A DNA stretch of 64,000 nucleotides, from the sequence record ON287372.1; one strand, 5' to 3'. Each line of letters starts with the position of its first letter. Positions within the stretch are counted from its first letter, which is position 1. A program made the position numbers and the translations under genes. Under the pieces are notes generated by a model, which had not been told where the DNA came from, did not search any database, and saw nothing but the letters and a program-made list of their open reading frames with translations. Of this stretch, positions 6,369 to 26,030 are shown piece after piece.

Positions 6369-6977
6369 ATGAATATCAAATCCTTAATTTCCGGACTCTT
6401 CGCGCAATACAAGACGTATCTGTTTATCGTCCTTATTGCGATCGTTTCAACCTACGTAGTTGTTAAGGTTAACGCCTACATCAACAACCAGGTTGAGAAG
6501 CGGTTATTGGAATCCAGAAACGCCATGCTGAAGGAACTTCAGAAATCCATCCAAGGATCCCTGGATAATAAATTGGACGGTCTTTCAGCTTCAATGAATG
6601 ATGGCTTCGCAAAAATCAACAAGGGTCTTAACGATGCTAAACAAAATATTGAAAGCCAGCGTACTCAGCTTGACAATATTGGCGATGTCTGGCTGCGCGT
6701 CGACGCAACCAAAGGCTCCGATGGAAACGCTGGAGATAAAGGTCAAGGAAGTAAAGGCACCGGAGATCAATCCGGAGATAATGGAACCTATTACGCCAAA
6801 CTTCCAAACTCGTCTCTGCAATTTCTTAAAGGGGAAGCCTACAGAGCAGATCAATGCGCCGTGCGCTTAGGGGCAGCGCAAGAGGCACTCGTTCAGTATA
6901 AAGGTGCCTTTGAGAAATACCAGACTTACGTACGCGAAGCTCTGGATCAAGCAAAGAAAACCCACGATGCAAAATAA
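6369..6977 (+). CDS. Inner-membrane spanin (Rz-like)
   Basis: Single N-terminal TM segment (YLFIVLIAIVSTYVVV), coiled-coil periplasmic region, C-terminal Cys; contains a nested lipoprotein ORF. Confidence 0.65.
   Translation: MNIKSLISGLFAQYKTYLFIVLIAIVSTYVVVKVNAYINNQVEKRLLESRNAMLKELQKSIQGSLDNKLDGLSASMNDGFAKINKGLNDAKQNIESQRTQLDNIGDVWLRVDATKGSDGNAGDKGQGSKGTGDQSGDNGTYYAKLPNSSLQFLKGEAYRADQCAVRLGAAQEALVQYKGAFEKYQTYVREALDQAKKTHDAK
6634..6870 (+). CDS. Outer-membrane spanin lipoprotein (Rz1-like), embedded in +1 frame
   Basis: ATG at 6634 with AAGGG upstream; MLNKILKASVLSLTILAMSG-C signal peptide and lipobox; Pro-rich mature part. Confidence 0.7.
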   Translation: MLNKILKASVLSLTILAMSGCASTQPKAPMETLEIKVKEVKAPEINPEIMEPITPNFQTRLCNFLKGKPTEQINAPCA

Positions 6978-7585: not shown

Positions 7586-8210
7586 TTTCGATCACCTGCA
7601 ATATTTTAGTTAACACAATATCCTGCAGATTATCGATAGAGTCAGTACCGTCTAAAACACTACGGTCAACGGGGAGACACTTAAACGCCCATTCGTAACG
7701 TTCACGATGGATATCGAACGTATCCATTATACGCTTCTCGATATCATCCAGCTCACCGGAGTTACACAGCATCAGGCGCTTCTTAGAAGTTTCTTTATCG
7801 ATGTCAAAGAAGAAGACATGATCAGGCTCGCATTCGAAATCGCCAATAACTTCGTTGTGAATATTGGCTGCTGCCCAACGATTAGATTCTTTTTCAGTAT
7901 AAGCGATTGTAGAATAAACCCACCGATCTACGAGAACGATCTTCCCAGCCTCTACAGAAGGTTTAATTACATGTTCCAGGTGTTCGGTACGACTAGCATT
8001 AAATAACAGCACACGGGACGATTCAGAGAGTTTCTGATGGTATCTCGTCTCATCGAAGAGGAGTAAGTCGCGGATTTTCTCTCCAATGAAAGTTCCACCC
8101 GGCTCTCTGCAAATTACGACTTCGTAACCTAAAGCCTTAAGCTTCTCAGCTACTCCGTCCCGACAAGTCGTTTTTCCTGCCCCATCCATTCCTTCGAAGA
8201 CGAAGAACAT
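7560..8210 (-). CDS. tmk: Thymidylate kinase
   Basis: FEGMDGAGKTT P-loop, REPGG and DRW motifs. Confidence 0.93.
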   Translation of the reverse strand: MFFVFEGMDGAGKTTCRDGVAEKLKALGYEVVICREPGGTFIGEKIRDLLLFDETRYHQKLSESSRVLLFNASRTEHLEHVIKPSVEAGKIVLVDRWVYSTIAYTEKESNRWAAANIHNEVIGDFECEPDHVFFFDIDKETSKKRLMLCNSGELDDIEKRIMDTFDIHRERYEWAFKCLPVDRSVLDGTDSIDNLQDIVLTKILQVIENEAGRTPR

Positions 8211-8794
8211 GTATCCACTCCTTCAATAATACACTTCATTTCATTTAGCCATTCAGTCATTGCCCAGTGACCAATTGCCACGCTATCGACGGCGTGTTCA
8301 TCGAGTGAATCAATCGGTACGTTCTTGATCAATGTCTTAAGGCGATTAATAGCCATTCGTACAATTAGTTTTTTGTCAGGGCTATCTGAGTTACGTGCAC
8401 CGACTGCCTTCTTAGCAACCGATGGCTCAACTGTTAATAGATGCATGGTATCATCGTAGCGCAATACAGCACGACGGATTGTAACGATACCTTCAACCAA
8501 TGACCGATAAGCATTAACCATACGGCGCCGGAAGAATGCTGATTCGCATACGACTAAATGAGGCTCAAACCGTTTCATGGAATCTACCACGAAATCCTCA
8601 CAAAGACGATGGCGTGCACCACGTTCTCCTAAGACCATATACGGGTGACGAATATTGAGAATAGGATCCGGCTTAAAGGTTGTCGCATAAACTAACGTCT
8701 CGGTATGGTTAATTAAATCATACTCGATTATCGATAACCCAAAACACTGACTACCGGGGTCGATTCCCATAACCCTGAATTTTGTATCATCCAT
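8150..8794 (-). CDS. ruvC: RuvC-like Holliday junction resolvase
   Basis: VMGIDPG, VVCES and DEHAVDSVAIG acidic motifs. Start reassigned to ATG 8794 (RBS GAGGG); the track's longer start runs through a terminator. Confidence 0.85.
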   Translation of the reverse strand: MDDTKFRVMGIDPGSQCFGLSIIEYDLINHTETLVYATTFKPDPILNIRHPYMVLGERGARHRLCEDFVVDSMKRFEPHLVVCESAFFRRRMVNAYRSLVEGIVTIRRAVLRYDDTMHLLTVEPSVAKKAVGARNSDSPDKKLIVRMAINRLKTLIKNVPIDSLDEHAVDSVAIGHWAMTEWLNEMKCIIEGVDTCSSSSKEWMGQEKRLVGTE

Positions 8795-8841
8795 AGCACC
8801 CTCGGACTGGTTTGATATAAAAAAATAAGTAAGCATAAAAA

Positions 8842-8863
8842 AGTAGAGGCCGAAGCCCCTACT
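8842..8863 (-). terminator. Intrinsic terminator followed by TATG
   Basis: Minus strand reads AGTAGGGGC-TTCG-GCCTCTACT-TTTTATG. Confidence 0.7.
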
Positions 8864-8877
8864 TTTAAGAATCGCCT

Positions 8878-10026
8878 TTAGTAAGCAGAATCGATATCGT
8901 AACGCAGTACTGCATTCCCGCGCAGGATACGCTGAGAACTCAACTTGAGCCCGACGGTTACAGTCCAACCATGGACAGAACGTTTTTGTTCGATGCTCTG
9001 AACAGTCGAATTAAGGAACGAGTTAACCAGATCGGATTGGTTCTTCTCGCCTCTGAGCTGAGTCCAGTTAGCTTGGATCATGCTAACAATGACATTGACC
9101 AGATTGACGTCAGTGAGCGAGTCGCCTAAACGATAGCCACGGATTGCACGTTGGTAATCCGAGAAGTCCAGAGGATAAGTCGTCGTATAAGCAGACTTCT
9201 GACCTGTACCTGTGCCGCTCGGATAATCCAGACCAGCCAATGCAAAGACATTCAGCTTAGTCAGATCGTAAGCTGGCGGATACTCCAGGCCATCAAGTAC
9301 ATCTTTAGGGAACAGGGAGATATCAGTCATTGCAGGGTATTCCAGACCTTCCAATTCGGTGGTGTGGATAATGATACCCAAGTCGATATCGTTCGGATAT
9401 TCCAAACCTTCCAGCTCAGTAATCGAAATGATCTTATTCATGTCGAATTGATCTGGGTAGTCCAGTCCTTTCAGAGTGCCGTTGGTCAGTTCGTAGAATA
9501 CACCGCTAAGTTTCTCAGCGTGGAATTTATCGAGGTCGCCATTAGGGATCAGTGTATCAAGCGAACTCTTCACGTTACGGAGTTTAAAGGCACAGACACC
9601 TGTCCAGCCCCAACTTGAGTCAACAAACGGCCACTCGATAGTTTGCTCGACATCACCAACTTCGATATTCATGTCCAGTAAGCCAGGAGCAAAGTCGTAA
9701 TCCTCAAAAGGAGGTAACCCGTATGCACGAGAAAGCTCCTTCAGAACCATACGGTTGCTGAGCCCTGAGTCTACTTGGATCTTTACGTCAATCCCTTTGA
9801 AGAGAATACCGTAATCACGTTTAAAGAAGCTAACGTCACGCAGCCCGAAATAACGATTAGAAAGATCTTTAGTCATCATCGTTTGACGACGGTCTAAAGC
9901 ATCGTAGTTGAGCCATGTAACTTCCAGATTGTCTTCTGTAAAGTCTGCCCCGAACTGCGCATTCTTTTTGTTGATTAGATCGATGATCTCGGACTTGATG
10001 GTGTCGTGGCCAAAGATATTACTCAT
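8878..10026 (-). CDS. Virion protein with five tandem L-x-G-L-x-Y-P repeats; paralog of 11751..12590
   Basis: Repeats LKGLDYP, LEGLEYP (twice), LDGLEYP, LAGLDYP lie between N- and C-terminal domains shared with the 287-aa ORF. Confidence 0.6.
   Translation of the reverse strand: MSNIFGHDTIKSEIIDLINKKNAQFGADFTEDNLEVTWLNYDALDRRQTMMTKDLSNRYFGLRDVSFFKRDYGILFKGIDVKIQVDSGLSNRMVLKELSRAYGLPPFEDYDFAPGLLDMNIEVGDVEQTIEWPFVDSSWGWTGVCAFKLRNVKSSLDTLIPNGDLDKFHAEKLSGVFYELTNGTLKGLDYPDQFDMNKIISITELEGLEYPNDIDLGIIIHTTELEGLEYPAMTDISLFPKDVLDGLEYPPAYDLTKLNVFALAGLDYPSGTGTGQKSAYTTTYPLDFSDYQRAIRGYRLGDSLTDVNLVNVIVSMIQANWTQLRGEKNQSDLVNSFLNSTVQSIEQKRSVHGWTVTVGLKLSSQRILRGNAVLRYDIDSAY
9220..9475 (-). repeat. Coding tandem repeat, 19-20 aa period
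   Basis: Five L-x-G-L-[DE]-Y-P units read from the translation; also visible as recurring ggata(t/c)tcca(a/g)-like DNA. Confidence 0.85.
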
Positions 10027-10041
10027 TTACCACCCCTTCAA

Positions 10042-10980
10042 TTAAGTGCGCGGCGAGATGTTCGCAGAGAACATTTGACGTGCGTTCTGAACCGCGTCAC
10101 GACCGGAGCTGGTTTCGATAGAATCAGAAGTCATCATCGGTTCGTTAGCGCCCATTTCCAGGGTGATAACAAAACCACGGTTGTCGAAGGACATCTGGCG
10201 GTAGGTAGACAGGAAGGTCAGAACCTGTGCGCAGATTGCCTCAGTCATTTGAATTGCACCACCGCCAGGACCAGGTGCTTGCACCGCACGTTTGAAAGCA
10301 GATACCAGACCGATCTCGGAAATGATAGCGCGCTTTTCGTTGCCGTACAGAATACGGGATACGTTGTTCAACTCTTTAACGTCGTTGTCATCGAACAATA
10401 CGTCGGTGGTCAACGATACAGTCAACGTGTCTGAGTTGGTAGTGACCGCCTGGTTAGTGGTCAGAGTTTTACGCTCAGGATACAGGTTGGAGTTGTTTGG
10501 CGTATACTCAGTAGTTGTAGCTACGCCGTCTTTCACAGTGGTGCGTTCCAGACGTGGCTTCTTACCGGTCAGGTCGATTGCCTTGGCGTAATACGAGAAG
10601 TAGTTAATCCCGTTACGGTTTTCCGATTTACGCAGGGCATATTTTTTCCGCTCATCTACGGACAAGTCATTAGACTCTTCACGCATGACAAACGGGATCA
10701 TGTTGAATGGAGCGAAATCGCCCGCCGTATGTTCAGCCGGCTCGATGATCACTTCGCCATCGGTAGTCGGTACAACAAAGTGACCCTTGTCGCCAATTAC
10801 CCAATAGTTAAAGGTAGGCATTTCGTTGGAGGCTAACTTAGCGTCCCGGTTAATGCTCAGGCGTTGGTTCAGAGTAGTGAAGTCGAGAACCGTGAGAGGA
10901 ATACCAGCCAACAGGCACGTTTGCAGCATCCCACTAAGAGCGGTGCGCGTAATCAAGTTAGTGTTAGTACTTGCGCTCAT
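10042..10980 (-). CDS. Conserved virion structural protein (possibly baseplate)
   Basis: 312-aa ORF with RBS AAGGA and an upstream TATG; structural-cluster context. Confidence 0.5.
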   Translation of the reverse strand: MSASTNTNLITRTALSGMLQTCLLAGIPLTVLDFTTLNQRLSINRDAKLASNEMPTFNYWVIGDKGHFVVPTTDGEVIIEPAEHTAGDFAPFNMIPFVMREESNDLSVDERKKYALRKSENRNGINYFSYYAKAIDLTGKKPRLERTTVKDGVATTTEYTPNNSNLYPERKTLTTNQAVTTNSDTLTVSLTTDVLFDDNDVKELNNVSRILYGNEKRAIISEIGLVSAFKRAVQAPGPGGGAIQMTEAICAQVLTFLSTYRQMSFDNRGFVITLEMGANEPMMTSDSIETSSGRDAVQNARQMFSANISPRT

Positions 10981-11044
10981 TTTAAATCCTTAAAGCTATA
11001 GCTCTCTAGTGGAAAGCTAAATGAGGGGAAGGTGACATAAAATA

Positions 11045-11071
11045 AGAGCCGGAGGTGAATCCCCCGGCTCT
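11045..11071 (-). terminator. Intrinsic terminator of the 177-aa gene
   Basis: AGAGCCGG...CCGGCTCT hairpin followed on the minus strand by TATTTTATG. Confidence 0.7.
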
Positions 11072-11081
11072 GAGTCAGCTA

Positions 11082-11615
11082 TTAAGCTGAAGGTGCGTCA
11101 AAGCCTTCCAACTCTTCGCTGAACGATTGCAGAGACTGATCGCCGGAAGTGATGGTGAAGTCGCCGTTGAAGACTTTGTTATCTGCCTTAACAGAGTAAA
11201 CGAAAGTCTGTACGGTACCTTCTGACTTGTCTTCTTTGAAGACAACATCAGCCGCAACGAATTTATCCCAAACGCCTTTTGCTACAGTCAGAGCGAAGGC
11301 ATCGCGGTTAGATTCGTCCAGGGCGGTATCGGACTTGGTAACGACGTTTTTACGGGTGATTTCAGAAGCGATGCTCAGGCGATCGTAGTAGAAATCGCGA
11401 GCTGCGCCTTTCAGCAGTTTGCTGTTAGCTGCCGGGGTCAGACCAATCACGGTGTTACCCGCTTTAGGGCCGGAGTTTGCGGCAGGTGCAGTGGTGACGG
11501 TATAATCAGTGCCCAGTTTAACGGCCTTCAGTTCTGGGATAGCAGTGCTATTTACCAGAAGACGAGTAAACTCGACGTCGGCTGTATTAGCCGGGTTAAA
11601 CGCGATACGTGACAT
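11082..11615 (-). CDS. Probable high-copy virion fibre/decoration subunit with C-terminal LEGFD motif
   Basis: Monocistronic (own TATG and terminator); codon bias like the MCP; ends SLQSFSEELEGFDAPSA; YYDRL segment resembles the N-domains of its neighbours. Confidence 0.55.
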   Translation of the reverse strand: MSRIAFNPANTADVEFTRLLVNSTAIPELKAVKLGTDYTVTTAPAANSGPKAGNTVIGLTPAANSKLLKGAARDFYYDRLSIASEITRKNVVTKSDTALDESNRDAFALTVAKGVWDKFVAADVVFKEDKSEGTVQTFVYSVKADNKVFNGDFTITSGDQSLQSFSEELEGFDAPSA

Positions 11616-11718
11616 CGGATAAATCCTTAAACAGATGAATTAGACATCCAAGAGAAGAGGATGAGTTTAACTCCAGAGGAGTATAAGGGGCTCCATAATA
11701 AAAAGGTATAACATAGCA

Positions 11719-11744
11719 CCTGCTGCTCCAAAAGAAGCAGCAGG
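11719..11744 (-). terminator. Terminator hairpin followed by CTATG
   Basis: CCTGCTGCT-8nt-AGCAGCAGG inverted repeat; TATG at 11715-11712 on the minus strand. Confidence 0.65.
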
Positions 11745-11750
11745 CATCTA

Positions 11751-12590
11751 TTATGGCATGTTGTAGTGCAGGATCAGGTGACCTGCTACGTTACTGCAGT
11801 AGTCGCTATCAAGGTGAATAACCAAGCAACGCTGATACGCAGTGTTAACGTAAACCGGAGCACTAGCCGTTGGGCCATTGAACCACACATCCGCACCGTT
11901 GGCATTCCACGGAGCTGGAGTTGGTTTCAGTACCCAGGTATCCGGAGACTTACGGTTCAGGCTATCGAGGAGTTCTCCTTCGATTGGATCGCCATAACCG
12001 AACTTCTGCAAACCTTCCACGTCGAAGGTATAATCGTTGGCATACAGGTAAAGTGGGCCTTGGATTTTCTCTGACTGGTTAGTTGGGTATTGTAGCCCGT
12101 CCAGGTCGTGGTTACGGATAACCGTTTCCAGTGCAACCTTTGGATCGCCGATGGTAACTTCCAACTGCCCAGTAAATGCAGGGCAAGTAGGACGAACGAT
12201 AATCATCGTTTTGGTTGGCAGGGTGGACAGGTTCAAAACGCCGTCGTAGATATCGCCAGCATCCAACTGGAAGTTGTAGTTGCTGTTGATCTCTTTCAGT
12301 AAGTCAGACTTCTTAAACTTACCGTTCGGTGAAACATAAACGCTGATCTCTTTAAAGATCTCGTTCAGTGCTGGGCGGTTCCAGGTCAGTTCTTCTTGAC
12401 CTTCACGACCCATGCCGGCGATAGCTTTCAGAATACCAGCGGTGTTACGCAGTGGATCGCCATTGGTGTTCTGGGTAAAGTTCGTTAGCCTTACTTGATC
12501 TTCTGAAAAGTCCGCGTCCGGGTTAGCCTCTTTAATAAGGTCAAAGACCAACCGGTTAGTGGGCTTATTGTAGTAATTCGAGTTTGCCAT
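11751..12590 (-). CDS. Virion protein with a single LDGLQYP motif; paralog of 8878..10026
   Basis: Start reassigned to ATG 12590 (RBS GGAG). Shares N-domain (WNRPAL...INSNYNF) and C-domain (...GHLILHYN) features with the 382-aa ORF. Confidence 0.6.
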   Translation of the reverse strand: MANSNYYNKPTNRLVFDLIKEANPDADFSEDQVRLTNFTQNTNGDPLRNTAGILKAIAGMGREGQEELTWNRPALNEIFKEISVYVSPNGKFKKSDLLKEINSNYNFQLDAGDIYDGVLNLSTLPTKTMIIVRPTCPAFTGQLEVTIGDPKVALETVIRNHDLDGLQYPTNQSEKIQGPLYLYANDYTFDVEGLQKFGYGDPIEGELLDSLNRKSPDTWVLKPTPAPWNANGADVWFNGPTASAPVYVNTAYQRCLVIHLDSDYCSNVAGHLILHYNMP

Positions 12591-12668
12591 TATTGACTCC
12601 AATAGGCGATACAATTCTCTATAACATTAACATAACAACCATCCTTGGTCATTAATAGTCAGGTTAGC

Positions 12669-15236
12669 TTACCCAAACAGATCGGATAGATCTCTAGGCT
12701 CGAAAGGCGGTGGCTCAACGGCATCGAATCCTTCTAGCTCATCGAAGATATTGAACAGATCGTAATCTGGCTCAATTACCCCAACAAAGGATCCAAGCAT
12801 TTCAGGGAACCCTTCCTCTAACGTCACCGGCTTAAATGGCTCCGGAATATCGAAGCCCTGTAGCCCATCATTAAAGTCTTCCAGAGAATACGGAACAATT
12901 GCTTCAGTCCATAGACCCGGTAATGACTTGGAGTTAACGACGAGTTTCTCAGGTGCCGGAATAACGTTAGTCCATAGGCCATCCAGGTTACGGTTCTTCA
13001 CCTCATTAGGAAGATACTCATCCTCACGGGGAATCCTTACCCATAGCCCAGGTAGACGAGGGTTGGTGATGACTTCATTAATCGGCTTGGCTGTAGCGAG
13101 GTATAACCACAAACCATTGAGGTCATGTTTACTGATCTCGAGTCCGATATCTTTAGCCAGCGACCCTTTGAATCTAACTTCTGCAATTTCGATCTGGTGA
13201 CGTGTAGAGACGTGCGTAGTTGGCAAGAACTCTGCAGAGGAGAACACGCGGTAGAAATGCGGGGAGTGGATATACTTGGAACGAATGTCCATCCCTTCAA
13301 ATACTGGCTCTTTAGGAGACAGTCTACCTTGTTGCCATTGTTGGATAATTTCCACACGTTGATCGATTTTAAACTCAGCAGAGGAGTTAGTCTCAATCCC
13401 ACCGAAACGGATAGCCAGGTTATCGACAATGATATTTGGCGACGCGTTAGTTTTGTGGACGTACTGAACTGAATAACTGGACAGCTGAGTCATGATGCCG
13501 ATCATGGCACTATGTACATCAGAAACCGAGATAGTTGATCTCAGATTAGCCCCGGTGGCAACTTCCATTAACTGTAAGCAGAACTCCGAATACGCAGTAG
13601 GGTCGCTTAACTCAACGTCCCAGTTCTTTGTACGGAACCAATCTTTATAGTTGATTGGCGTAGCGGCCAGCTTACACTTCTTGTTAATGTAGAAACGCCG
13701 AGTCATCACTTCCATCTGGCCACGAGAACGGAAATCCTGTTGACGGGTGTACATCACTCGATGTGAGTTAATGTTACCCTGGATTTGCGCTACCGTATTA
13801 TAGAAGGCTTCGGTAGAGATGATAGTTGATACCGGAGTGTGCTCAGTCAACGCCATCAGTATAGCAGATTCGCTAACGTGCTCAGGCTCACAGATGCCAC
13901 GTAGTTCACTAAAGTCAGGTGGAGAGATCCGCTGTACGAAGAATGCAGTTAAATCAGGAGCTGTTACCAGATCGTATTCGAACTGCTTCATGACGCAATA
14001 AATCCAGAGGATCAAAGCCTCCCTTACCGTCATCGACATCGTTTCTTGATTCACTGGACTAGGGATAGAGATGTTAGCAACGTAACGTCCTTCCGTAGCA
14101 AGGTAAATCCATTCGCCTAACAACGTATCCACGAACTTGTGCGGAACCGAATCAGATCTGTCGATCATGATAGACTCAAGCACTTTGGTCGGAAGCTCAC
14201 CCGTAATGGCGTTACTCACCCTTACCGGGACTTGTGCTTTCTGAGCTGCTAAATACTTGGAGTTATCTTTAGCCGAGTTGACCTCGTTATCTAACGCCTC
14301 TTCAATAGAGATACGTTCGATACCCTGCACCGATTCCGCTAAACTGTTCTTAGGATCCTTAGCCACCTCACCTTCAGGTAACAGCTGATTAGGTACGTCC
14401 TTCGAGTTGTGTCGAAGGAAATAAGCCGTCAGCGGAATGTTACGGGCCGTAAGGATATTCAGGATCAGGTCATCGAAGGTCGTCGTTTTACCGGCGTGGT
14501 TATCGATATAGCGAATATTACGGTACAGCCACAAAGCCTGAGTCGTGTTGACGTAGTCTTTGTAAGCATTGAGTCGACCATGTGAACCCAAGTACGCCCA
14601 GAGGTGGTAACTATGGACATATTGCGTACGGCAATAGTTCTCACGGATGGAAATAATCTCACCAACCAGGTGTTGAAACATATTCCCAAAAAACGTCGCC
14701 GGGTAATACTTTTGTACGGCAGCGGCAAATACTAGATACCAACGTTGGGTATACCGGTAAAGCCACTCTTGTAAATCTTGGATTAAATACGTTTCGTTAG
14801 GATCAACTTCTGACTTATCGTAATAAAGGATAGTGAAGTTTTTGGCATTAATCGCCTCATCTATATCCACTGGCCATAGCACACCACGGATCAGACGTTC
14901 TTGATCTGGGTAACGATTCAGTAGTTCGGTATAGTACCGAGAATCGTAGCTGTACGCAGCTTTTGTGGCTCTGTGGATTAGGAGGTTATCATATGTGAAG
15001 TCAATCTCCTCTAAGGTGTCCAAGGAGGTTACTTTCATCGGCTTATCGGCAGCATGATACTTACCTGCTAAGTTCATGTAGTAACGCCACGTCGATGGAA
15101 CGTAAGGATCAACAGTAAAGCCAATGCCAGTAAGGTAATTGTTGGACGCTTCCGCATCGGCGTTAAACTTGATTGTCATCGTTTGCGCTAATCGCAAAGC
15201 GCTATCGGTATACAATCGTTGCGTGGTATCCGCCAT
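12669..15236 (-). CDS. Large virion (probably baseplate) protein with C-terminal L-x-G-[LF] repeat tail
   Basis: 855 aa; tail carries LNGLW, LPGLW, LDGLW, LPGLW, LQGFD, LGSF, LEGFD; divergent from the portal gene as in phiKZ-like phages. Confidence 0.6.
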   Translation of the reverse strand: MADTTQRLYTDSALRLAQTMTIKFNADAEASNNYLTGIGFTVDPYVPSTWRYYMNLAGKYHAADKPMKVTSLDTLEEIDFTYDNLLIHRATKAAYSYDSRYYTELLNRYPDQERLIRGVLWPVDIDEAINAKNFTILYYDKSEVDPNETYLIQDLQEWLYRYTQRWYLVFAAAVQKYYPATFFGNMFQHLVGEIISIRENYCRTQYVHSYHLWAYLGSHGRLNAYKDYVNTTQALWLYRNIRYIDNHAGKTTTFDDLILNILTARNIPLTAYFLRHNSKDVPNQLLPEGEVAKDPKNSLAESVQGIERISIEEALDNEVNSAKDNSKYLAAQKAQVPVRVSNAITGELPTKVLESIMIDRSDSVPHKFVDTLLGEWIYLATEGRYVANISIPSPVNQETMSMTVREALILWIYCVMKQFEYDLVTAPDLTAFFVQRISPPDFSELRGICEPEHVSESAILMALTEHTPVSTIISTEAFYNTVAQIQGNINSHRVMYTRQQDFRSRGQMEVMTRRFYINKKCKLAATPINYKDWFRTKNWDVELSDPTAYSEFCLQLMEVATGANLRSTISVSDVHSAMIGIMTQLSSYSVQYVHKTNASPNIIVDNLAIRFGGIETNSSAEFKIDQRVEIIQQWQQGRLSPKEPVFEGMDIRSKYIHSPHFYRVFSSAEFLPTTHVSTRHQIEIAEVRFKGSLAKDIGLEISKHDLNGLWLYLATAKPINEVITNPRLPGLWVRIPREDEYLPNEVKNRNLDGLWTNVIPAPEKLVVNSKSLPGLWTEAIVPYSLEDFNDGLQGFDIPEPFKPVTLEEGFPEMLGSFVGVIEPDYDLFNIFDELEGFDAVEPPPFEPRDLSDLFG

Positions 15237-15289: not shown

Positions 15290-18094
15290 ATGATGAAGAA
15301 ACCTACTCTTACCAGTAGCGGTGTTGATACTTCAGTTCGAAGTAAACCCGCTAAGTGGTTAGAAAATACTCCCGCTGCAACTTCCATCATGACTAAGATG
15401 GTACGTGATCATCTTACGGGTGATCATAGTCAGGGCGAAGGCGTTAAAGTACATGACGAGACAATCTTTGACCATATCGTCGGGACACGTGCTCAGAAGA
15501 ACTTGGACGCAGAAACAATCCTGCAATTAAGCAGCGATTTAAAACTGATCAAACAAATGATCATTTCGACTACGTTGTCTCCGGTCGATATGTTTGATGG
15601 AGAACTGGTCTTTAAAACAGAAGATTCAGAAATTCGTCCTACAATACTTAATGAAATTACTGAGGTTATCCGCGAACACTTTGGTGATGGCGGTTATTAC
15701 CCTCTGCGCGATAAGTTTCCCGAGATCATCGGCGAAGCCTTATTCGATTACGGCGCCTGGGTATCGGTAATCGTACCAGAAGCAGTAATTGACGATATCA
15801 TCAATGATCGCACCGCTGGCGTCTCTAATGAGTCGGCCTCAATGACCGATGAAATGTACGCTGCCCATATGGCTGCGCAATTCAAAGACGGTACATTGAA
15901 GCACACCGGTAAAGGTATTCTGGGCGATCCTGGTTTGACTGAAGCAGAAGCCAAGTCGGATAAAAGACGTAACGTCTCTACTCCAAGTATGGAAAACTTC
16001 TTCTGGAATCCAGGTGGCGACCGCGAGACTCCGACTCGCATTAATGATGCGGCTACCATCACCGATAACATTGCTGTTCTAGGTTTAAGTACAGTCCGTG
16101 ACCGCGTTAACCAACGCCGCATGAACCAGGTCTTCCGCGCCACATCTCGTGTAGCTAACGAGGCGTTCAGCGGTGGTAACGGTCATATCAAGGAGATCCG
16201 TACCTTAGCGAATAGTCTGTATCGCGATCAGGGCGGCGGAGGTATGGAACGCGTTAAAGTCATGCCTACAGCTGCTGAGGCTTCACGTTCATCTATTGGC
16301 CATCCATTGGTAATCAAGATCCCTAGTGAATCTTGTATTCCGTGTTTCCCTAAAGGCGAACCGCGTAACCACCTAGGCTACATTATCCTTCTGGACGAAC
16401 TCGGTCACCCGTTGGATGTTACTGACGAAATTGCCCGTGCTGTACGTAATGGTAACAATGGTTTGAATGGCGATTCACAGATGAACCAAACTTCATCTCT
16501 GATTCAACAAACTAAACTGTTGGGTTCCGGGCTGTGCTACGACTCCGATGGCCGTAATGCTGCTGAGCGTGTACGTATCTTTGACCAGGTGCTGGAAGAG
16601 AACGTACTGAACCGTATCAAAAACGGTTTGCTCGGTCGTAACGTCAAGTTGGGTTGGAACGAAGATATCATGCGTCTGTTCCTGTTCCGTAAGTTTGCTA
16701 ACCAACGTACCCACATGGTATTCGTACCTGTTGAGAACGTTGCGTACTTTGCATACGACTACGACAAGAACGGTATGGGTAAATCTCTCATGGACGACAT
16801 CAAACAAGTCTCTGCACTCCGTGCGATGACAACGTTTGCTAACTTCATGGCCGGTGTTAAGAACGCCGTAGGACGTACTAAGGTTACGATGAACATCGAC
16901 CCACGTAACCCAGACCCAGAGAAAGCCTATCACGTAATGACTGATGAGTTCATGCGTCAACAAGCAGGCGGTACGCCTACTGACGTGACATCGGCAGCAG
17001 AGATGTTCCGTGTTATCCGTTCCATGGGTGTGGTTATTGAAGTTCAAGGTAACCCGCGTATGCCGAACACCACGGTTGATGTCTCTGAGTTCCAATCCCA
17101 GAAACAACAGATCGATCCAGAGTTCTCCCGTGAACTGCAACGTCAGCAATACATGGGTCTGTTCGTAACACCTGAGATGGTGGACATGACTACCCAGGCA
17201 GACTTCGCAATCTCTCGCTGGACAACTAACCAACTGTACGCTAAGCGTATCATGATGATTCAGGACGATACCTGTAAGCACGCTAAGAAGTTCGTTAAGT
17301 CTTACTCGCTTTCAGATGGTACTCTGGTTGGTAAAATGCAAGAAGTGTTCCGTGAGCACAACGATCAACTCCCAGAAGAGTATAGAGTAACGGATATGGA
17401 AAACTCATATTCCCTGCAATATACTTTGGCAATTGAAGAGTTCTTCCGTGTCCTTTATCTGGAACTCCCTCGTCCTGAGTCTAACCGGATCGAGAACCAG
17501 AAAGAAGAATACGACAAAGTCTCTCAATGGATTGATGACATGGTAGAGAACTACATCTCTCCTGAATTGATCGGGCCGTCTCTGAGTGATGAGGATCGCG
17601 ATAAGATCGATCACCTTAAAGCTAACGTCGCAGCTTACTTCAAACGTGAGTACCTAGTTAAAACTGGTATGGACTTCGGTCTTAGTGAACTTACTCGCGT
17701 TGGTAGTGAAGACAACCCTGCACTGGACTTCTCCAAAGAGCTCAATGCTCATATGGCGAACCTGGTACACAACCTGGGCGATACCGCAGCGGTTATCCGT
17801 AAACTGCGTGAGGATCGTCTGGCTGTCACTGAAGAGAACAACCCTGACTTAGCAGAAGCTATTAAGAATGCTAATGACGGTGGTGGTTTCGGTGGTGGTA
17901 GTGATTGGGGTGGTGATGAATCAACTGATACAGGTAGTGATGCTTTCTCAACCGGATCAGATGAATTCAACGACTACGGCGGTGATGATTTAACAGGCGG
18001 TGATGACTTCGGTAGTAAGGAAGATGAATTCGGTGGTGATCGTGCCAACGAAGATCCTTTCCAAGCTCCGGCGTCCGATAACCCTGCACCTTAA
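15290..18094 (+). CDS. Portal protein (phiKZ gp129 / SPN3US gp81-like)
   Basis: 934 aa; RTKVTMNIDPRNP resembles the T4 gp20 clip region; acidic Gly-rich C-tail; N-terminal [SA]-x-E sites; synteny from memory. Confidence 0.65.
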   Translation: MMKKPTLTSSGVDTSVRSKPAKWLENTPAATSIMTKMVRDHLTGDHSQGEGVKVHDETIFDHIVGTRAQKNLDAETILQLSSDLKLIKQMIISTTLSPVDMFDGELVFKTEDSEIRPTILNEITEVIREHFGDGGYYPLRDKFPEIIGEALFDYGAWVSVIVPEAVIDDIINDRTAGVSNESASMTDEMYAAHMAAQFKDGTLKHTGKGILGDPGLTEAEAKSDKRRNVSTPSMENFFWNPGGDRETPTRINDAATITDNIAVLGLSTVRDRVNQRRMNQVFRATSRVANEAFSGGNGHIKEIRTLANSLYRDQGGGGMERVKVMPTAAEASRSSIGHPLVIKIPSESCIPCFPKGEPRNHLGYIILLDELGHPLDVTDEIARAVRNGNNGLNGDSQMNQTSSLIQQTKLLGSGLCYDSDGRNAAERVRIFDQVLEENVLNRIKNGLLGRNVKLGWNEDIMRLFLFRKFANQRTHMVFVPVENVAYFAYDYDKNGMGKSLMDDIKQVSALRAMTTFANFMAGVKNAVGRTKVTMNIDPRNPDPEKAYHVMTDEFMRQQAGGTPTDVTSAAEMFRVIRSMGVVIEVQGNPRMPNTTVDVSEFQSQKQQIDPEFSRELQRQQYMGLFVTPEMVDMTTQADFAISRWTTNQLYAKRIMMIQDDTCKHAKKFVKSYSLSDGTLVGKMQEVFREHNDQLPEEYRVTDMENSYSLQYTLAIEEFFRVLYLELPRPESNRIENQKEEYDKVSQWIDDMVENYISPELIGPSLSDEDRDKIDHLKANVAAYFKREYLVKTGMDFGLSELTRVGSEDNPALDFSKELNAHMANLVHNLGDTAAVIRKLREDRLAVTEENNPDLAEAIKNANDGGGFGGGSDWGGDESTDTGSDAFSTGSDEFNDYGGDDLTGGDDFGSKEDEFGGDRANEDPFQAPASDNPAP

Positions 18095-23603: not shown

Positions 23604-23643
23604 TACATGAATTTAGGTTCATTCAGCAATAGGGCAAAATAGA

Positions 23644-23665
23644 CCGGGGACCCGAAGGTCCCCGG
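23644..23665 (-). terminator. Strong terminator of the MCP transcript
   Basis: CCGGGGACC-TTCG-GGTCCCCGG followed by TCTATTTT on the minus strand. Confidence 0.85.
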
Positions 23666-23681: not shown

Positions 23682-23732
23682 CTAGGCAGGATCGAACCCG
23701 CTTAGAGGGTTCTCAAACGCCTCTTCAAGAGC
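23682..23732 (-). other. In-frame UGA-readthrough extension of the MCP (ALEEAFENPLSGFDPA-TAG)
   Basis: Translated by hand from 23732 downward; carries the L-x-G-F-D motif shared with other virion proteins. Confidence 0.6.
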
Positions 23733-26030
23733 TCAACCGCCAGTAGGAGGAGTAACTTCACCCTTGAACTCCGCGGCGTTGGTGACTTTAACGTCGTTCG
23801 CCTGAGAGGTGCGTTTCGCGATCGCTTCTTCCAGGTTCACCACGCGGATGCTCAGCATGATTGGCAGGAAGTTGAAGTAACGGTAACGCGGGGTCAGACG
23901 GATTTCGTTACCGATGCGTTGGTTACGAATCATCTGGAAGTTAACCAGGTACTCTGGGATCAGACCCAGCACACCGTGTTGCAGTGGGTGCGGTTCATCA
24001 ACGTTCGGCAGCACGAAGGTCATGATGATCTGATCTTTCATGCGCAGGTCGGAGATGCGAGCGATGGTGTAGTCGTAACCAATACCAACGGTACGGTCGT
24101 CGCCAGGAATCTGCAGGTACTGAGGCAGACGCATGTCGGTACCGATAGCTACGTGCGGCTTAGGAGTACGGCCTGGGAAGGCAGCTTCCAGAGCAGCGGT
24201 GTAACCAGTCAGCTGGTCAGCGGTGTAAACCATTTCGTTGATCTTGCTAACCAACAGACCCTGGATGTCAGTCTGCTTAGCAGCTGAGGTCAGGTTGTTC
24301 AGGTCTTTCAGCAGGTCAACTTCGGCTTCCATGTAGTATGGACGCACGTAGTACTGACCGACGCCTTCCAGGCCTTGGTTAGATTCGATCGGGTGCGGTA
24401 CGCCAACGCCCAGGTAGGCTTTCAGAGTATCGCGACGGTTCAGCAGGGTGGTAACTGCGGCGTTACGCATCTGTACACGGTAAGCCGTGGTCAGAGCTTC
24501 GATACGCGGGTACACTTTCTCTTCGTCTTGCAGAGCTGGTTTGATGATAACCAGCGGCGGCAGAGTTGGGATCATGAAGCCGTGTTTCATCACGTCGGAG
24601 TCGATTGCCAGGCCCAGTTCCAGTTGGTTGATGTTGGTCAGACGAGCTTCCAGGCTGTAGCCTGCTGCTTCGAAAGTCAGACCAGCGATCAGTGCTGCGA
24701 TACGAGCGTCAGACAGAGCGATTTCCACGCCGTCTTTGTCGAATGCTTTGCTGATTGCCAGAGGACGGATGGCGGTTTCGCCGGAACCGGTTTCAACGTT
24801 GATTTCGCCGTCAACTTTAACGGACAGTTCCAGGCTATAGCCGGCGTCCAGCAGAGCTTTCAGGTTGGCAGATTCTGCCTGGTCAACGGTTTTGGTTTCT
24901 GCGTTCACTGCCAGAGTGGAGTGGAACTTCAGCTGCATCTGACGGAAGTTGTATTCGCGGGTAGCAGTATACGCTGCGTACTGGTCGCGGTTCACTTCGA
25001 AGTTAACTTGCTCTTTAACGCCGCCTTTAGCAACGGTAACCAGCAGGTCTTTCAGGGCAATACGGCTGTCCAGGGAGTCAGTGAAGGTTGGAGAACCTTT
25101 CTGCAGACGGCTTGGAGTTTGCGCCAGCATTGGCAGGTTGAAGTCAACGCCGAATTTCAGGTAGTTGGTTTCGAACTCTTCGTTCGCCTGAACCACTTTG
25201 CGCGGAGCAACGATAGCTGGATCGATGAACTGGTCATCGTTTTCGCCGGCGTGTACGCATGGGATCAGCTCAGTGGAATTGCTTTCCAGAACGGTGTAGT
25301 CCAGCAGGCCCTGCAGAACGTTGCGTTTCGGGAACTTCACTGCGTCGCCTTTCAGGCCGGAACCCTGGTAGGTTTCCCAAACCATGTTACGGCGGATCGA
25401 CATCACGAAACCAGCTTGGTCCGGAGTGATGATTTGGGTACGGTAGAACAGCTCAGCGAATGGGTGCTGTTTAGCAGCCATCATGTTGATCGCGTAGCTG
25501 TGCTCACGCCATTTTTCAGTTTCTTTCTCATCGAAAGATTCGATAGAAGGACGGCTCGCTTCTGGCAGGGTAACGATAGAACCGTTCGCGCCGGAAGAAA
25601 CCATGTTGTGGATTACTACGCCGCTTTCGAACGAAGGGTTCGAATAACCGTCGCGGTAATACGCGGCTGGGTTTTTGTAGGACATTGCCAGAACGGCCGC
25701 AGCTTCAACAGCAACTTTGTTGCCGTGCTCTTCGATGAACTCACCGCCTTCAACGATTGCGCTGTCAGCAACGCCGCCTTCCAGTTCGCTAACTGCGCCA
25801 GCAGCGTCAGCCTGAACTTCGGTCAGATCTTGGGTCAGGTTTTCCAGGGTGGTTTCAACGTCGGAGGCGTTAACGCCCAGCTCGCTGTAGCTTTCCAGGG
25901 ATACGGACATCACGCCAGCTTGTGCGCCTTCGCCCAGGCCGTTAATGTTGCGCTTTACAACACCGTCAATTTTCTCAACCAGAGTTTTGACGATATTACC
26001 GCGCAGTGCGCTTTTCAGTGGTCTTGCCAT
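23733..26030 (-). CDS. Major capsid protein precursor (phiKZ gp120-like)
   Basis: 765 aa; extreme codon bias; acidic propeptide with VSLE/S, PSFE/S, PSIE/S sites; own TATG promoters and terminator; next to the DnaB gene. Confidence 0.88.
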   Translation of the reverse strand: MARPLKSALRGNIVKTLVEKIDGVVKRNINGLGEGAQAGVMSVSLESYSELGVNASDVETTLENLTQDLTEVQADAAGAVSELEGGVADSAIVEGGEFIEEHGNKVAVEAAAVLAMSYKNPAAYYRDGYSNPSFESGVVIHNMVSSGANGSIVTLPEASRPSIESFDEKETEKWREHSYAINMMAAKQHPFAELFYRTQIITPDQAGFVMSIRRNMVWETYQGSGLKGDAVKFPKRNVLQGLLDYTVLESNSTELIPCVHAGENDDQFIDPAIVAPRKVVQANEEFETNYLKFGVDFNLPMLAQTPSRLQKGSPTFTDSLDSRIALKDLLVTVAKGGVKEQVNFEVNRDQYAAYTATREYNFRQMQLKFHSTLAVNAETKTVDQAESANLKALLDAGYSLELSVKVDGEINVETGSGETAIRPLAISKAFDKDGVEIALSDARIAALIAGLTFEAAGYSLEARLTNINQLELGLAIDSDVMKHGFMIPTLPPLVIIKPALQDEEKVYPRIEALTTAYRVQMRNAAVTTLLNRRDTLKAYLGVGVPHPIESNQGLEGVGQYYVRPYYMEAEVDLLKDLNNLTSAAKQTDIQGLLVSKINEMVYTADQLTGYTAALEAAFPGRTPKPHVAIGTDMRLPQYLQIPGDDRTVGIGYDYTIARISDLRMKDQIIMTFVLPNVDEPHPLQHGVLGLIPEYLVNFQMIRNQRIGNEIRLTPRYRYFNFLPIMLSIRVVNLEEAIAKRTSQANDVKVTNAAEFKGEVTPPTGG

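Follow-up and report, generated by a model that had tools for sequence, protein, structure and literature searches.

A linker motif shared by DUF7941 proteins, a baseplate wedge protein and a peptide after the capsid gene stop codon suggests a candidate fibre docking network in Serratia phage Totoro

Why does one short sequence motif recur in four adjacent genes of a jumbo phage, and once more directly behind the stop codon of its capsid (MCP) gene? The window analyzed here is a stretch of 64,000 nucleotides of sequence record ON287372.1, to which all positions refer. Its source is Serratia jumbo phage Totoro, a phiKZ-like chimallivirus. An initial annotation of the region had proposed that the motif is a strand donated by one virion protein to the next, and that the proteins carrying it build fibres on the virion surface. 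The features concerned are as follows.

8878 to 10026, minus strand: 382-aa DUF7941 protein (Pfam PF25613, 77.2 bits; hhalign 99.0% over both domains)
9205 to 9567, minus strand: five-copy motif array inside the 382-aa protein
10042 to 10980, minus strand: 312-aa DUF7208 protein (PF23838), homologue of phiKZ gp139 and Goslar gp32
11045 to 11071, minus strand: terminator-like hairpin directly 3' of the 177-aa gene (a Moabite terminator is annotated at the equivalent place)
11082 to 11615, minus strand: 177-aa probable minimal DUF7941 protein (hhalign 95.0%, E 3.9e-8)
11085 to 11138, minus strand: C-terminal candidate docking peptide of the 177-aa protein (F-x-x-x-L-x-G-F-D-A-P flavour)
11717 to 11746, minus strand: terminator-like hairpin separating the 287-aa from the 177-aa gene
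11751 to 12590, minus strand: full-length DUF7941 protein (287-aa ORF, annotated as 279 aa; Pfam 270.4 bits)
12669 to 15236, minus strand: 855-aa baseplate wedge protein, homologue of phiKZ gp128 and Goslar gp35
12672 to 13169, minus strand: C-terminal wedge tail with motif array (aa 690-855)
23636 to 23665, minus strand: terminator hairpin and T-run 3' of the post-stop peptide (a Moabite terminator is annotated here)
23682 to 23732, minus strand: post-stop peptide, 16 in-frame sense codons and a TAG, directly 3' of the MCP stop
23733 to 26030, minus strand: MCP gene, 765 aa, stop codon TGA

The motif, L-x-G-[LF]-x, has 13 copies in the four adjacent genes, where 0.118 would be expected from the rest of the genome. 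The count was made with the regular expression L.G[LF][DEQW] across the whole Totoro genome (1170 ORFs, 160,016 aa). The expression has 24 matches, 13 of them within the 1701 aa of the four genes (log10 P approximately -22). Composition shuffles never reached the observed count, either for the 382-aa protein (0/5000) or for the 855-aa protein (0/5000). The recurrence described in the initial annotation is thereby confirmed, and copies are found where it had placed them: five in the 382-aa protein, one each in the 287- and 177-aa proteins and one after the MCP stop. The "about 7" copies reported for the 855-aa protein are six strict and one or two degenerate ones, all beyond residue 700. No description of the motif was found in the literature searched.

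Within Pfam DUF7941 the motif forms the conserved core of the linker. The linker columns of 107 DUF7941 representatives, taken from clusters at no more than 50% identity, are well conserved (L 80, G 67, L/I/F 90, Y 72 and P 87), and hydrophobic positions alternate upstream of the motif. The 382- and 287-aa proteins are members of this family, and the 177-aa protein is probably one as well. The 177-aa protein is assigned by profile-profile comparison, as its PF25613 score of 19.6 bits lies under the curated threshold of 27 bits (PHROG 1037, E 1.6e-5). Five further Totoro proteins match PF25613 at 29.8-77.2 bits. The N-domain with a [YFW]-x-R segment, said to be shared by the three proteins, is homologous by hhalign, and its most conserved residue, R72, lies in that segment and is kept in at least 90% of 106 representatives. 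The alignment of the 382 family to the DUF7941 family (99.0%, E 5e-18) spans the N-domain, one motif and the C-domain, and so also covers the C-domain common to the 382- and 287-aa proteins. In the alignment of the 177 family (95.0%, E 3.9e-8) the C-terminal motif falls on the family linker motif. N-domain-only DUF7941 members of other lineages likewise carry the motif at the protein end.

The 287-aa ORF starts with a TTG at 12614, and the annotated ATG gives 279 aa. The protein comprises an N-domain, a linker motif (L-D-G-L-Q-Y-P, 12084-12104) and a C-domain, and is the homologue of phiKZ gp127 and Goslar gp22. Its AF2 model has a mean pLDDT of 95.9. The modelled N-domain has an alpha/beta fold, and its single significant match among solved structures is the N-domain of phiKZ gp127 (Foldseek; the 287-aa model against 9xqd_0 gives E 2e-7, TM 0.70). 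No pilin or Ig fold was matched by this model among solved structures at E <=0.001. The motif is placed at a pLDDT of about 92 and, judging from this model, may pack within its own chain. It is coil by DSSP here and disordered in the AF2 model of the 382-aa protein, with no strand in either. These monomer models do not bear out the proposal that the motif is a beta-strand inserted into the next subunit, as in pilus donor-strand complementation. The role of cap suggested for the 287-aa protein is also abandoned, because it has both an acceptor domain and a motif, as does Goslar gp22, which polymerizes. By a grammar of valences the candidate caps are three Totoro proteins of 188, 683 and 686 aa, encoded elsewhere in the genome, that have the N-domain and no motif. 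In the two larger ones an extensive C-terminal part carries the annotation pectin lyase or tail fibre.

In the 382-aa protein an N-domain (aa 1-153) and a C-domain (aa 275-382) enclose five copies of L-x-G-L-[DE]-Y-P (aa 154-274) spaced at 19-20 residues. AF2 models residues 154-274 at pLDDT <50 and without strands. Three to five copies are kept in its 17 homologues (44-82% identity); copies 2 and 3 do not vary at L, G, L, Y and P, nor does copy 4 at L, G, L and Y. That five conserved motifs lie in a stretch predicted to be disordered fits the suggestion that this protein is a multivalent hub, and on the model it is a candidate for that role. No such disordered five-motif linker was found described in the literature searched.

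The 177-aa protein consists of an N-domain and linker only, as do Goslar gp23 and phiKZ gp143, and its one motif lies 9 residues before the C-terminus. It has only four close homologues, and all four keep the C-terminal peptide. The gene is flanked by terminator-like hairpins and ranks 10th of 280 in codon adaptation, in agreement with its description as a separate transcription unit with high codon bias. Goslar gp23 is present in approximately 2140 copies per virion (10.64898/2026.04.21.720040). By analogy with this protein of the same architecture, the 177-aa protein is a candidate for an abundant chain monomer, as had been supposed.

The 855-aa protein, at first taken for a generic tail protein, is by homology a baseplate wedge protein of the phiKZ gp128 type; the wedge role of gp128 is taken from PMC13250141. 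It matches PHROG 3222 (E 1e-237) and, over its full length, the solved wedge chains 11lx_Bh (E 4.6e-113), 36za_sR (E 7.7e-109) and 9xqs_C (E 3.9e-108). In the tail, four L-x-G-L-W copies are followed by two L-x-G-F-D copies and the degenerate ones at a spacing of 20-23 residues. Among 120 wedge homologues only 3 motif matches fall in the first 600 residues and 179 in the tails, a 192-fold ratio of rates. The homologues show lineage-specific motif flavours and hold from 0 to at least 12 copies per protein. This comparative evidence fits the proposed role of the tail as an anchor, and from sequence its motif copies are candidate fibre anchor sites on the baseplate. Motif arrays limited to wedge C-tails were not found described in the literature searched.

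The 312-aa protein (PF23838, 353 bits; PDB 9xpg/9xqd, E 2e-56) has no motif. Dimers of its DUF7208 homologues gp139 and gp32 form the spoke that leads from the wedge to the peripheral baseplate (PMC13250141; Goslar preprint 10.64898/2026.04.21.720040). The protein is a neighbour of the motif proteins and possibly a partner.

Just 3' of the MCP TGA lies one in-frame motif copy of the same flavour as the C-terminus of the 177-aa protein. Among 302 Totoro genes TGA is the stop codon of 65 (22%) and TAA of 195. We sampled 20 clades, which are not phylogenetically independent: ten have a conserved in-frame post-stop peptide and all ten use TGA, and the ten without a recognizable one all use TAA. 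In 11 sequences checked, the TGA is followed by A, C or G and in no case by T, and Psa21 also has A at this place. Moabite and 2050HW retain the peptide, and the changes in it are biased to the third codon position. Of 48 bases, 16 differ between Totoro and 2050HW (5, 2 and 9 at the first, second and third codon positions); the changes touch 11 codons, 6 of them synonymously. phiKZ and 201phi2-1 share 16 of 26 residues, and for half of the shared residues the codons differ. The reading frame is kept although the end of the MCP before the stop varies in length and sequence among Moabitevirus species. An in-frame start codon is absent from the Moabitevirus extensions.

In Goslar, phiKZ and 201phi2-1 the post-stop peptide clearly copies the C-end of the phage's own N-domain-only DUF7941 protein. 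The match scores are 55 for Goslar gp23 (next 34) and 63 for phiKZ gp143 (next 33), and the partner in 201phi2-1 is gp228. An Ea277G-like contig has a weaker copy (40, next 27). The peptides of PCH45 and Totoro resemble the monomer C-end at the level of the motif only, and for the 16-residue Totoro extension the alignment score alone cannot tell the 177-aa and wedge matches from chance hits. Together, the clade survey and the copying of monomer C-ends fit the proposal that the peptide is an anchor, and the peptide is a candidate product of UGA readthrough. An in-frame peptide after a capsid-gene TGA was not found described in the literature searched. The C-arm of the phiKZ MCP extends to proteins of the outer surface at the pentons (PMC11297242). 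In solved capsids the C-arms are packed at the hexamer centre, so an extension would have to emerge through or beside that bundle.

Our preferred reading, which we consider probable, is that the region holds genes for part of the chimallivirus DUF7941 fibre system, with the linker peptide docking on the next N-domain. Each DUF7941 protein would have an N-terminal acceptor domain followed by a flexible linker with the core hydrophobic-x(n)-L-x-G-[LIF]-x-Y-P or a lineage variant, and docking of one subunit's peptide on the N-domain of the next would give head-to-tail chains. With one acceptor and one peptide the 177-aa protein would be the abundant chain extender. The 287-aa protein (acceptor, peptide and C-domain) would serve at the peripheral baseplate as an extender or adaptor, in the manner of phiKZ gp127, which lies at the far end of the gp139 band that begins at gp128 (PMC13250141). 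A single acceptor combined with five peptides along a disordered stretch would make the 382-aa protein a branching hub, and the peptide-less 188-, 683- and 686-aa proteins would be chain ends. Peptide-only anchors would be the disordered wedge C-tail and a minor readthrough MCP presenting the monomer's docking peptide at the outer capsid surface. Since peptide copies occur both on a baseplate protein and after a potentially leaky MCP stop, fibres may anchor on tail and head.

A network of domains and docking peptides that builds virion fibres matches the published Goslar model and is partly supported. This preprint (10.64898/2026.04.21.720040) describes head-to-tail DUF7941 dimers through the linker predicted by AF3 and gp22 filaments seen by negative stain, and its evidence of oligomers covers Goslar gp22 and gp23 and phiKZ gp126-gp127. 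The peptide-domain pairing, the occurrence of readthrough and the fibres on the head are what we infer. From the initial interpretation, the domain-plus-peptide network stands; the strict pilus analogy and the cap do not.

Could the motif arrays serve another purpose? In the wedge tail and the 382-aa protein they might bind the DUF7208 (gp139/gp32) spoke dimers, as a staple or ruler for the five-dimer band and not as fibre anchors. In phiKZ, gp139 dimer A touches gp128 and five dimers extend to gp127 (PMC13250141). The four to five L-x-G-L-W copies and the five 382-aa copies roughly equal this number, the 382-aa gene directly follows that of the gp139 homologue, and no DUF7941 linker of Totoro has the L-x-G-L-W flavour. 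However, phiKZ has the five-dimer band and a gp128 tail without such copies, Goslar gp35 carries two to three copies against five dimers, and the copy number in wedge homologues varies from 0 to at least 12. The 382-aa copies align to the DUF7941 linker, which AF3 places on the DUF7941 N-domain in the Goslar preprint. We regard a DUF7208 staple as unlikely. Donor-strand complementation of the pilus type, in which the motif would supply the beta strand missing from an incomplete Ig-like fold in the next subunit, has the same logic of a peptide filling a site on its neighbour and would suit the alternating hydrophobic positions. It is very unlikely given an alpha/beta N-domain without pilin or Ig matches among solved structures, a motif modelled as coil or disordered, and conserved G and P residues, which are poor strand formers. 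We find it likewise very unlikely that the motif is only an internal structural element of the DUF7941 linker, its other copies being fragments that were duplicated, now drift and play no part in docking. The high-confidence placement in the 287-aa monomer model agrees with such an element, but five copies cannot all pack on one domain and, although predicted to be disordered, they are conserved in 17 homologues. Copies are also kept over deep divergence in unrelated proteins (wedge tail and MCP extension).

The peptide after the capsid gene raises a question of its own. We entertain, as a tentative but real possibility, that many chimalliviruses make a fraction of their MCP by programmed UGA readthrough, showing a monomer-mimic peptide, and that the DUF7941 coat is largely capsid-anchored. 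In much of the Chimalliviridae, phiKZ and Goslar included, a small share of capsid subunits would arise by reading through the UGA and display the peptide on the outer surface, and both the head and the wedge tails would nucleate DUF7941 chains. With thousands of monomer copies per virion the fibre coat would then be mostly capsid-anchored, and the leakiness of the stop would set the number of anchors. The peptide could instead be untranslated, with its conservation owed to an RNA or terminator element, or to a capsid gene that was formerly longer and left it as a relic. The peptide is short, a terminator follows closely, ten clades are without it, and no MCP readthrough product is reported in the literature searched. 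Yet a relic or RNA element sits poorly with the third-position bias and many synonymous changes, a frame kept beside a varying MCP end, and the strict division of stops between carriers (10/10 TGA) and non-carriers (10/10 TAA). The peptide also tracks the lineage-specific C-end of another protein, and the hairpin is downstream of the peptide, not inside it. An untranslated element is thus quite unlikely.

The proposal of a chimallivirus fibre system dates only from 2026, and the head-to-tail interpretation of DUF7941 is largely anticipated by the Goslar preprint of April of that year (10.64898/2026.04.21.720040). The DUF7941 'fibre cloud' of Goslar and phiKZ gp126, gp127 and gp143 belong to the same Pfam family and show the same synteny beside the wedge and the gp139 homologue. 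Three architectures are in common: N-domain with linker and C-domain, N-domain with linker, and N-domain with large C-terminal parts. The preprint's model is that of linker docking head-to-tail on the N-domain; it names no sequence motif, assumes about six anchors on the peripheral baseplate, and mentions neither wedge-tail motif arrays nor a multi-motif paralogue nor the capsid-gene stop codon. Totoro differs from that account in having a five-motif DUF7941 member. On phiKZ gp143, PMC12676376 cites a preprint that calls it a lysis regulator, and its gene tolerates transposon insertions; both count against the preferred reading.

The proposed Totoro system resembles the chaperone-usher pilus in polymerization through a peptide that fills a site on the next subunit, and in having terminators, extenders and anchors. 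It differs in that no Ig-like fold, predicted strand, chaperone or usher is found, and assembly would be cytoplasmic and on a virion. Cellulosome cohesin-dockerin scaffolds are multivalent networks of domains and short linear motifs. They share with the DUF7941 system multivalence and a grammar of valences that pairs each module with one partner peptide or domain; there is no relation of sequence or fold, and the likeness is one of logic only. A defined docking motif would provide such a grammar, by which sequence alone predicts which virion proteins start, extend, branch and end fibres, and existing maps and proteomes offer a means of comparison for these predictions. Judging from the wedge-tail arrays, the baseplate may have far more anchor sites than the six supposed until now.

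Minor C-terminally extended capsid proteins include the Qbeta read-through coat protein A1 (at UGA) and the frameshifted 10B of T7. The post-stop peptide would be alike in giving a minor extended capsid form by recoding at the gene end. In contrast to these, it is known from sequence alone, in dsDNA phages of 200-300 kb, and the extension is a candidate docking peptide of 15-48 residues, not a domain, that mimics the tail of another virion protein. If translated, it would represent conserved programmed stop-codon readthrough in large dsDNA phages, and would explain the location of about 2000 copies of an unlocated virion protein.

The window is 100% identical to Serratia phage Totoro (vB_SmaS-Totoro, ON287372.1; record base 186001 is base 1 of the window). 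Totoro is a phiKZ-like (chimallivirus) myovirus with a genome of 278.8 kb. It belongs to Moabitevirus and has approximately 79% identity to Moabite and 2050HW. The genes concerned are the following:

Minus strand, first as transcribed: 855-aa protein, homologue of the phiKZ baseplate wedge protein gp128
Minus strand, second: 287-aa ORF (annotated as 279 aa), DUF7941 protein
Minus strand, third: 177-aa DUF7941 protein
Minus strand, fourth: 312-aa protein, homologue of phiKZ gp139
Minus strand, fifth: 382-aa DUF7941 protein
15290-18094, plus strand: portal protein (phiKZ gp129 homologue, 934 aa), divergent from and upstream of the five-gene set, with a low-complexity Gly/Asp/Glu-rich C-terminal tail of approximately 90 residues
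23733-26030, minus strand: major capsid protein (MCP) gene

The domains that the initial annotation saw in common between the 382-, 287- and 177-aa proteins are real, as judged by Pfam and by profile-profile comparison. The 287-aa protein is covered along its whole length by Pfam DUF7941 (270 bits). The 382-aa protein scores 77 bits, and the match to the 177-aa protein is weak (19.6 bits, threshold 27). In profile-profile comparison the 382 family aligns with DUF7941 at 99.0%, across the N-domain, one motif and the C-domain. The 177 family aligns at 95.0%, with its C-terminal motif on the linker motif of the family. Plain phmmer gave almost no matches among the paralogues; profile methods were required. 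The [YFW]-x-R segment singled out earlier holds the best-conserved residue of the N-domain. The view of the 177-aa gene as a separate unit with high codon bias is also borne out, as it has a terminator-like hairpin on either side and stands at rank 10 among 280 genes in codon adaptation, measured relative to the capsid and sheath genes. The C-terminal motif end of its product is retained in three close homologues.

The family profile and Pfam together identify eight DUF7941 proteins in Totoro. Those of 287, 382 and 177 aa bear the motif, those of 183 and 190 aa have a degenerate motif near the C-end, and that of 188 aa has none. The remaining two (683 and 686 aa) are also without the motif and have large C-terminal parts. 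They are encoded by tandem genes outside the window (ON287372.1 122282-126404; 25282-29404 of locus L010). One is annotated as a pectin lyase in the record, and the Moabite homologue is called a tail fiber protein. Their C-terminal parts have no sequence match in Pfam or among solved structures, so a putative enzymatic nature comes solely from the annotation of the records. Both are candidate host-binding fibre tips. By homology, the Totoro proteins would be located on the virion.

The positions reported earlier for the motif (L-x-G-[LF]-x) are correct. The pattern L.G[LF][DEQW] has 24 matches genome-wide (1170 ORFs with a minimum of 50 aa, 160,016 aa), 13 of them inside the 382-, 287-, 177- and 855-aa genes; the rate outside these genes predicts 0.118 (log10 P approximately -22). 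Composition shuffles of the 382- and 855-aa proteins never reached the observed motif count. Copies are spaced by 19-20 residues in the 382-aa protein and by 20-23 in the tail of the 855-aa protein. A position-weight scan of Totoro for further carriers returned the known copies and one weak match (11.2; true copies score 17 or more). An alignment of the query with 106 full-length DUF7941 representatives (library clustered at 50% identity) is conserved in the motif columns (number of sequences with L 80, G 67, L/I/F 90, Y 72, P 87) and upstream of them at one L and two hydrophobic positions. This alignment identifies the motif as the conserved linker core of DUF7941. In N-domain-only representatives of other lineages it lies a few residues before the C-terminus, as in the 177-aa protein. 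The fifth position is variable within DUF7941 (N, D, K and other residues). A prohead-protease cleavage site was considered because G-L-E in some copies resembles the phiKZ site S/A/G-x-E; it was rejected in view of the variable fifth position and of the carriers, which are baseplate or fibre proteins.

The initial annotation had proposed that the motif is a beta-strand donated to the next subunit as in pili. The AF2 model of the 287-aa protein (mean pLDDT 95.9, pTM 0.72) has an alpha/beta N-domain and a C-domain, with the motif as coil (pLDDT approximately 92). Its sole significant solved match is the N-domain of phiKZ gp127 (E 2e-7, TM 0.70), and no pilin or Ig fold is found among the solved-structure matches. 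The predicted viral structures that match it are all chimallivirus proteins, either N-domain-only, full-length, or with the N-domain and a long C-terminal part. The 382-aa model has two confident domains, and residues 154-274, which hold all five motifs, are without strands at pLDDT below 50. A pilus-type donor strand is therefore not supported, since the motif is coil or disordered in the models and the alpha/beta N-domain has no pilin or Ig match. In the 287-aa protein the linker may pack in cis. The motifs of the 382-aa protein are conserved in 17 homologues (44-82% identity). Copies 2 and 3 never vary at L, G, L, Y and P, and copy 4 retains L, G, L and Y. The array thus consists of conserved short peptides in a stretch predicted to be disordered, as docking motifs look.

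The core of the earlier proposal is anticipated by an April 2026 preprint on Goslar (10.64898/2026.04.21.720040), and the DUF7941 family and its filament model are already known. The preprint defines DUF7941 as a chimallivirus-specific family with ten members in the Goslar virion, among them gp23 (N-domain and linker, approximately 2140 copies) and gp22 (with the C-domain, approximately 580). AF3 predicted head-to-tail oligomers in which the disordered linker of each protomer binds the N-domain of the one that follows, and purified gp22 formed filaments in negative stain. A fibre cloud with approximately six anchor sites on the peripheral baseplate was proposed. The word 'motif', the wedge tail, a multi-motif member and the capsid stop codon are all absent from this preprint. 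The 2026 structural atlas of phiKZ (PMC13250141) identifies gp128 as the wedge protein of the baseplate. In it, five gp139 dimers line up in a band that leads from gp128 over the peripheral baseplate, gp127 lies at the band end, and terminal peptides of several baseplate proteins are inserted into neighbours.

The motif in the wedge protein is confined almost wholly to the tail. Among 120 gp128 homologues (33-82% identity) there are 3 matches in the pooled first 600 residues and 179 in the C-tails, a 192-fold difference in rate. Copies per homologue range from 0 to 6 by the strict pattern, in lineage-specific flavours, and some long tails carry arrays of a dozen degenerate copies. In the Totoro tail, four L-x-G-L-W copies come first and two L-x-G-F-D copies after them. 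The latter flavour is common to the tail and the 177-aa C-end; the former is absent from all DUF7941 linkers of Totoro. The tail copies might instead staple the gp139 band, but this explanation is weakened by phiKZ, which has the band and a gp128 tail without such copies.

The Totoro MCP gene ends in TGA, followed by 16 in-frame sense codons, a TAG and a terminator hairpin. The post-stop peptide has the flavour of the 177-aa C-end. In Moabite, Yaphecito and 2050HW the TGA and the peptide are kept, though the MCP end before the stop varies in length and sequence. Between Totoro and 2050HW, 16 of the 48 bases of the extension differ (5, 2 and 9 by codon position), and 6 of the 11 changed codons are synonymous. 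TGA accounts for 22% of Totoro gene stops and TAA for 65%. In a survey of sequences from the phage collection, a TGA with a conserved in-frame peptide of 15-48 codons was found in 10 of 20 sampled clades (Moabitevirus, Ea277G-like, PCH45, two metagenomic contigs, RP12, phiKZ, 201phi2-1, Psa21 and Goslar). The other ten have TAA with nothing recognisable after it. The clades are not independent, so the link between TGA and peptide is an association and not a probability. The base after the TGA was A, C or G and never T in the 11 sequences checked, and is A in Psa21 also. In PCH45 and two metagenomic relatives (loci L017 and L027) the in-frame stretch runs to 39-48 codons, and one of these has two motif copies. 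The extensions of phiKZ and 201phi2-1 agree at 16 of 26 residues, and at half of these the codons differ.

The extension follows the lineage-specific C-end of the N-domain-only DUF7941 protein of the same phage. Goslar has a common run around N-V-A-D-G-F in the extension and gp23 (local score 55; the next-ranked ORF in the locus reaches 34). The quite different flavour of phiKZ, repeated R-Y-L-E-N-G units, is found in both extension and gp143 (63 against 33), and 201phi2-1 has R-Y-x-E units in its extension and gp228. The likeness is weaker in the Ea277G-like contig and PCH45. In the Totoro comparison, the C-end of the 177-aa protein and the tail of the wedge protein share ranks 2-3 among 1170 ORFs, a result that is not significant by itself.

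Two other accounts of the peptide were considered. An independent start was rejected, as no in-frame start codon is present in the extensions of Moabitevirus and RP12; in the other lineages such codons occur only within or after the motif. A phage-encoded suppressor tRNA was likewise rejected because the only tRNA is Ser(GCT). We regard it as likely that the extension is translated and selected. No report of capsid-gene readthrough in these phages was found in the literature searched. In phiKZ, hexamer centres hold a pored six-helix bundle made by the MCP C-arm, which at pentons extends to the outer-surface protein gp244 (PMC11297242), a layout that places the MCP C-end at or near the outside.

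These elements suggest a grammar in which DUF7941 subunits would chain head to tail, the linker peptide docking on the next N-domain as in the literature model. The abundant 177-aa protein would extend chains and the 382-aa protein would branch them. Proteins with a motif-less N-domain would terminate chains and may bear parts for host binding or degradation. By valence, the eight Totoro proteins would comprise extenders, one brancher and three chain ends; the 287-aa protein, earlier taken for a cap, is not one by this grammar. Carriers of the peptide only, namely the wedge tail and a minor read-through form of MCP, would serve as anchors, with up to six or seven sites per wedge. Approximately 1600 capsid subunits and approximately one per cent readthrough would give some tens of anchors per head. 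The fibre system as a whole seems to us rather probable, and capsid-anchored fibres are put forward only tentatively. A TEM paper on Totoro does not mention hairs or fibres. Recoded extensions of capsid proteins have precedents in Qbeta and T7. What appears new is the motif with its grammar, the arrays in the wedge tail, the member with five motifs and a conserved putative UGA readthrough peptide that mimics the monomer tail.

Klebsiella jumbo phages (compared loci L038 5416-5958 and L006/L007) still have the wedge-tail motifs, a homologue of the 382-aa protein with 3-5 motifs, and a monomer of 180 aa of the N-domain-only type. TAA closes their capsid gene and no extension follows, so a head anchor, if it exists at all, was lost or never gained in these phages. 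In phiKZ, gp143 (locus L039 23694-24227) is a 177-aa DUF7941 virion protein encoded between the holin gp142 and endolysin gp144 genes, and its C-terminal R-Y-L-E-N-G units recur after the capsid gene TGA (locus L033). As cited in PMC12676376, a preprint assigns gp143 a role in lysis (lysis regulator), and the gene tolerates insertions.

The capsid gene also coincides with a G+C peak at 24001-26000 (0.54, against approximately 0.47 elsewhere) and tops the codon-adaptation ranking. A sigma-70 promoter scan gave fewer matches than in shuffles and is uninformative; phages of this type use their own polymerases. The 202-aa gene at 6369-6977 (plus strand) is 'hypothetical' in the Totoro record, and its Moabite homologue is annotated as an i-spanin with an o-spanin gene embedded in another frame. 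The RuvC-like gene (8150-8968, minus strand) has a long upstream ORF, started by TTG, which shares 91 bases with the end of the 382-aa gene. In the record the start lies further in, so that the gene reaches only to 8794, and a terminator-like hairpin at 8839-8866 inside the longer ORF argues for the shorter start.
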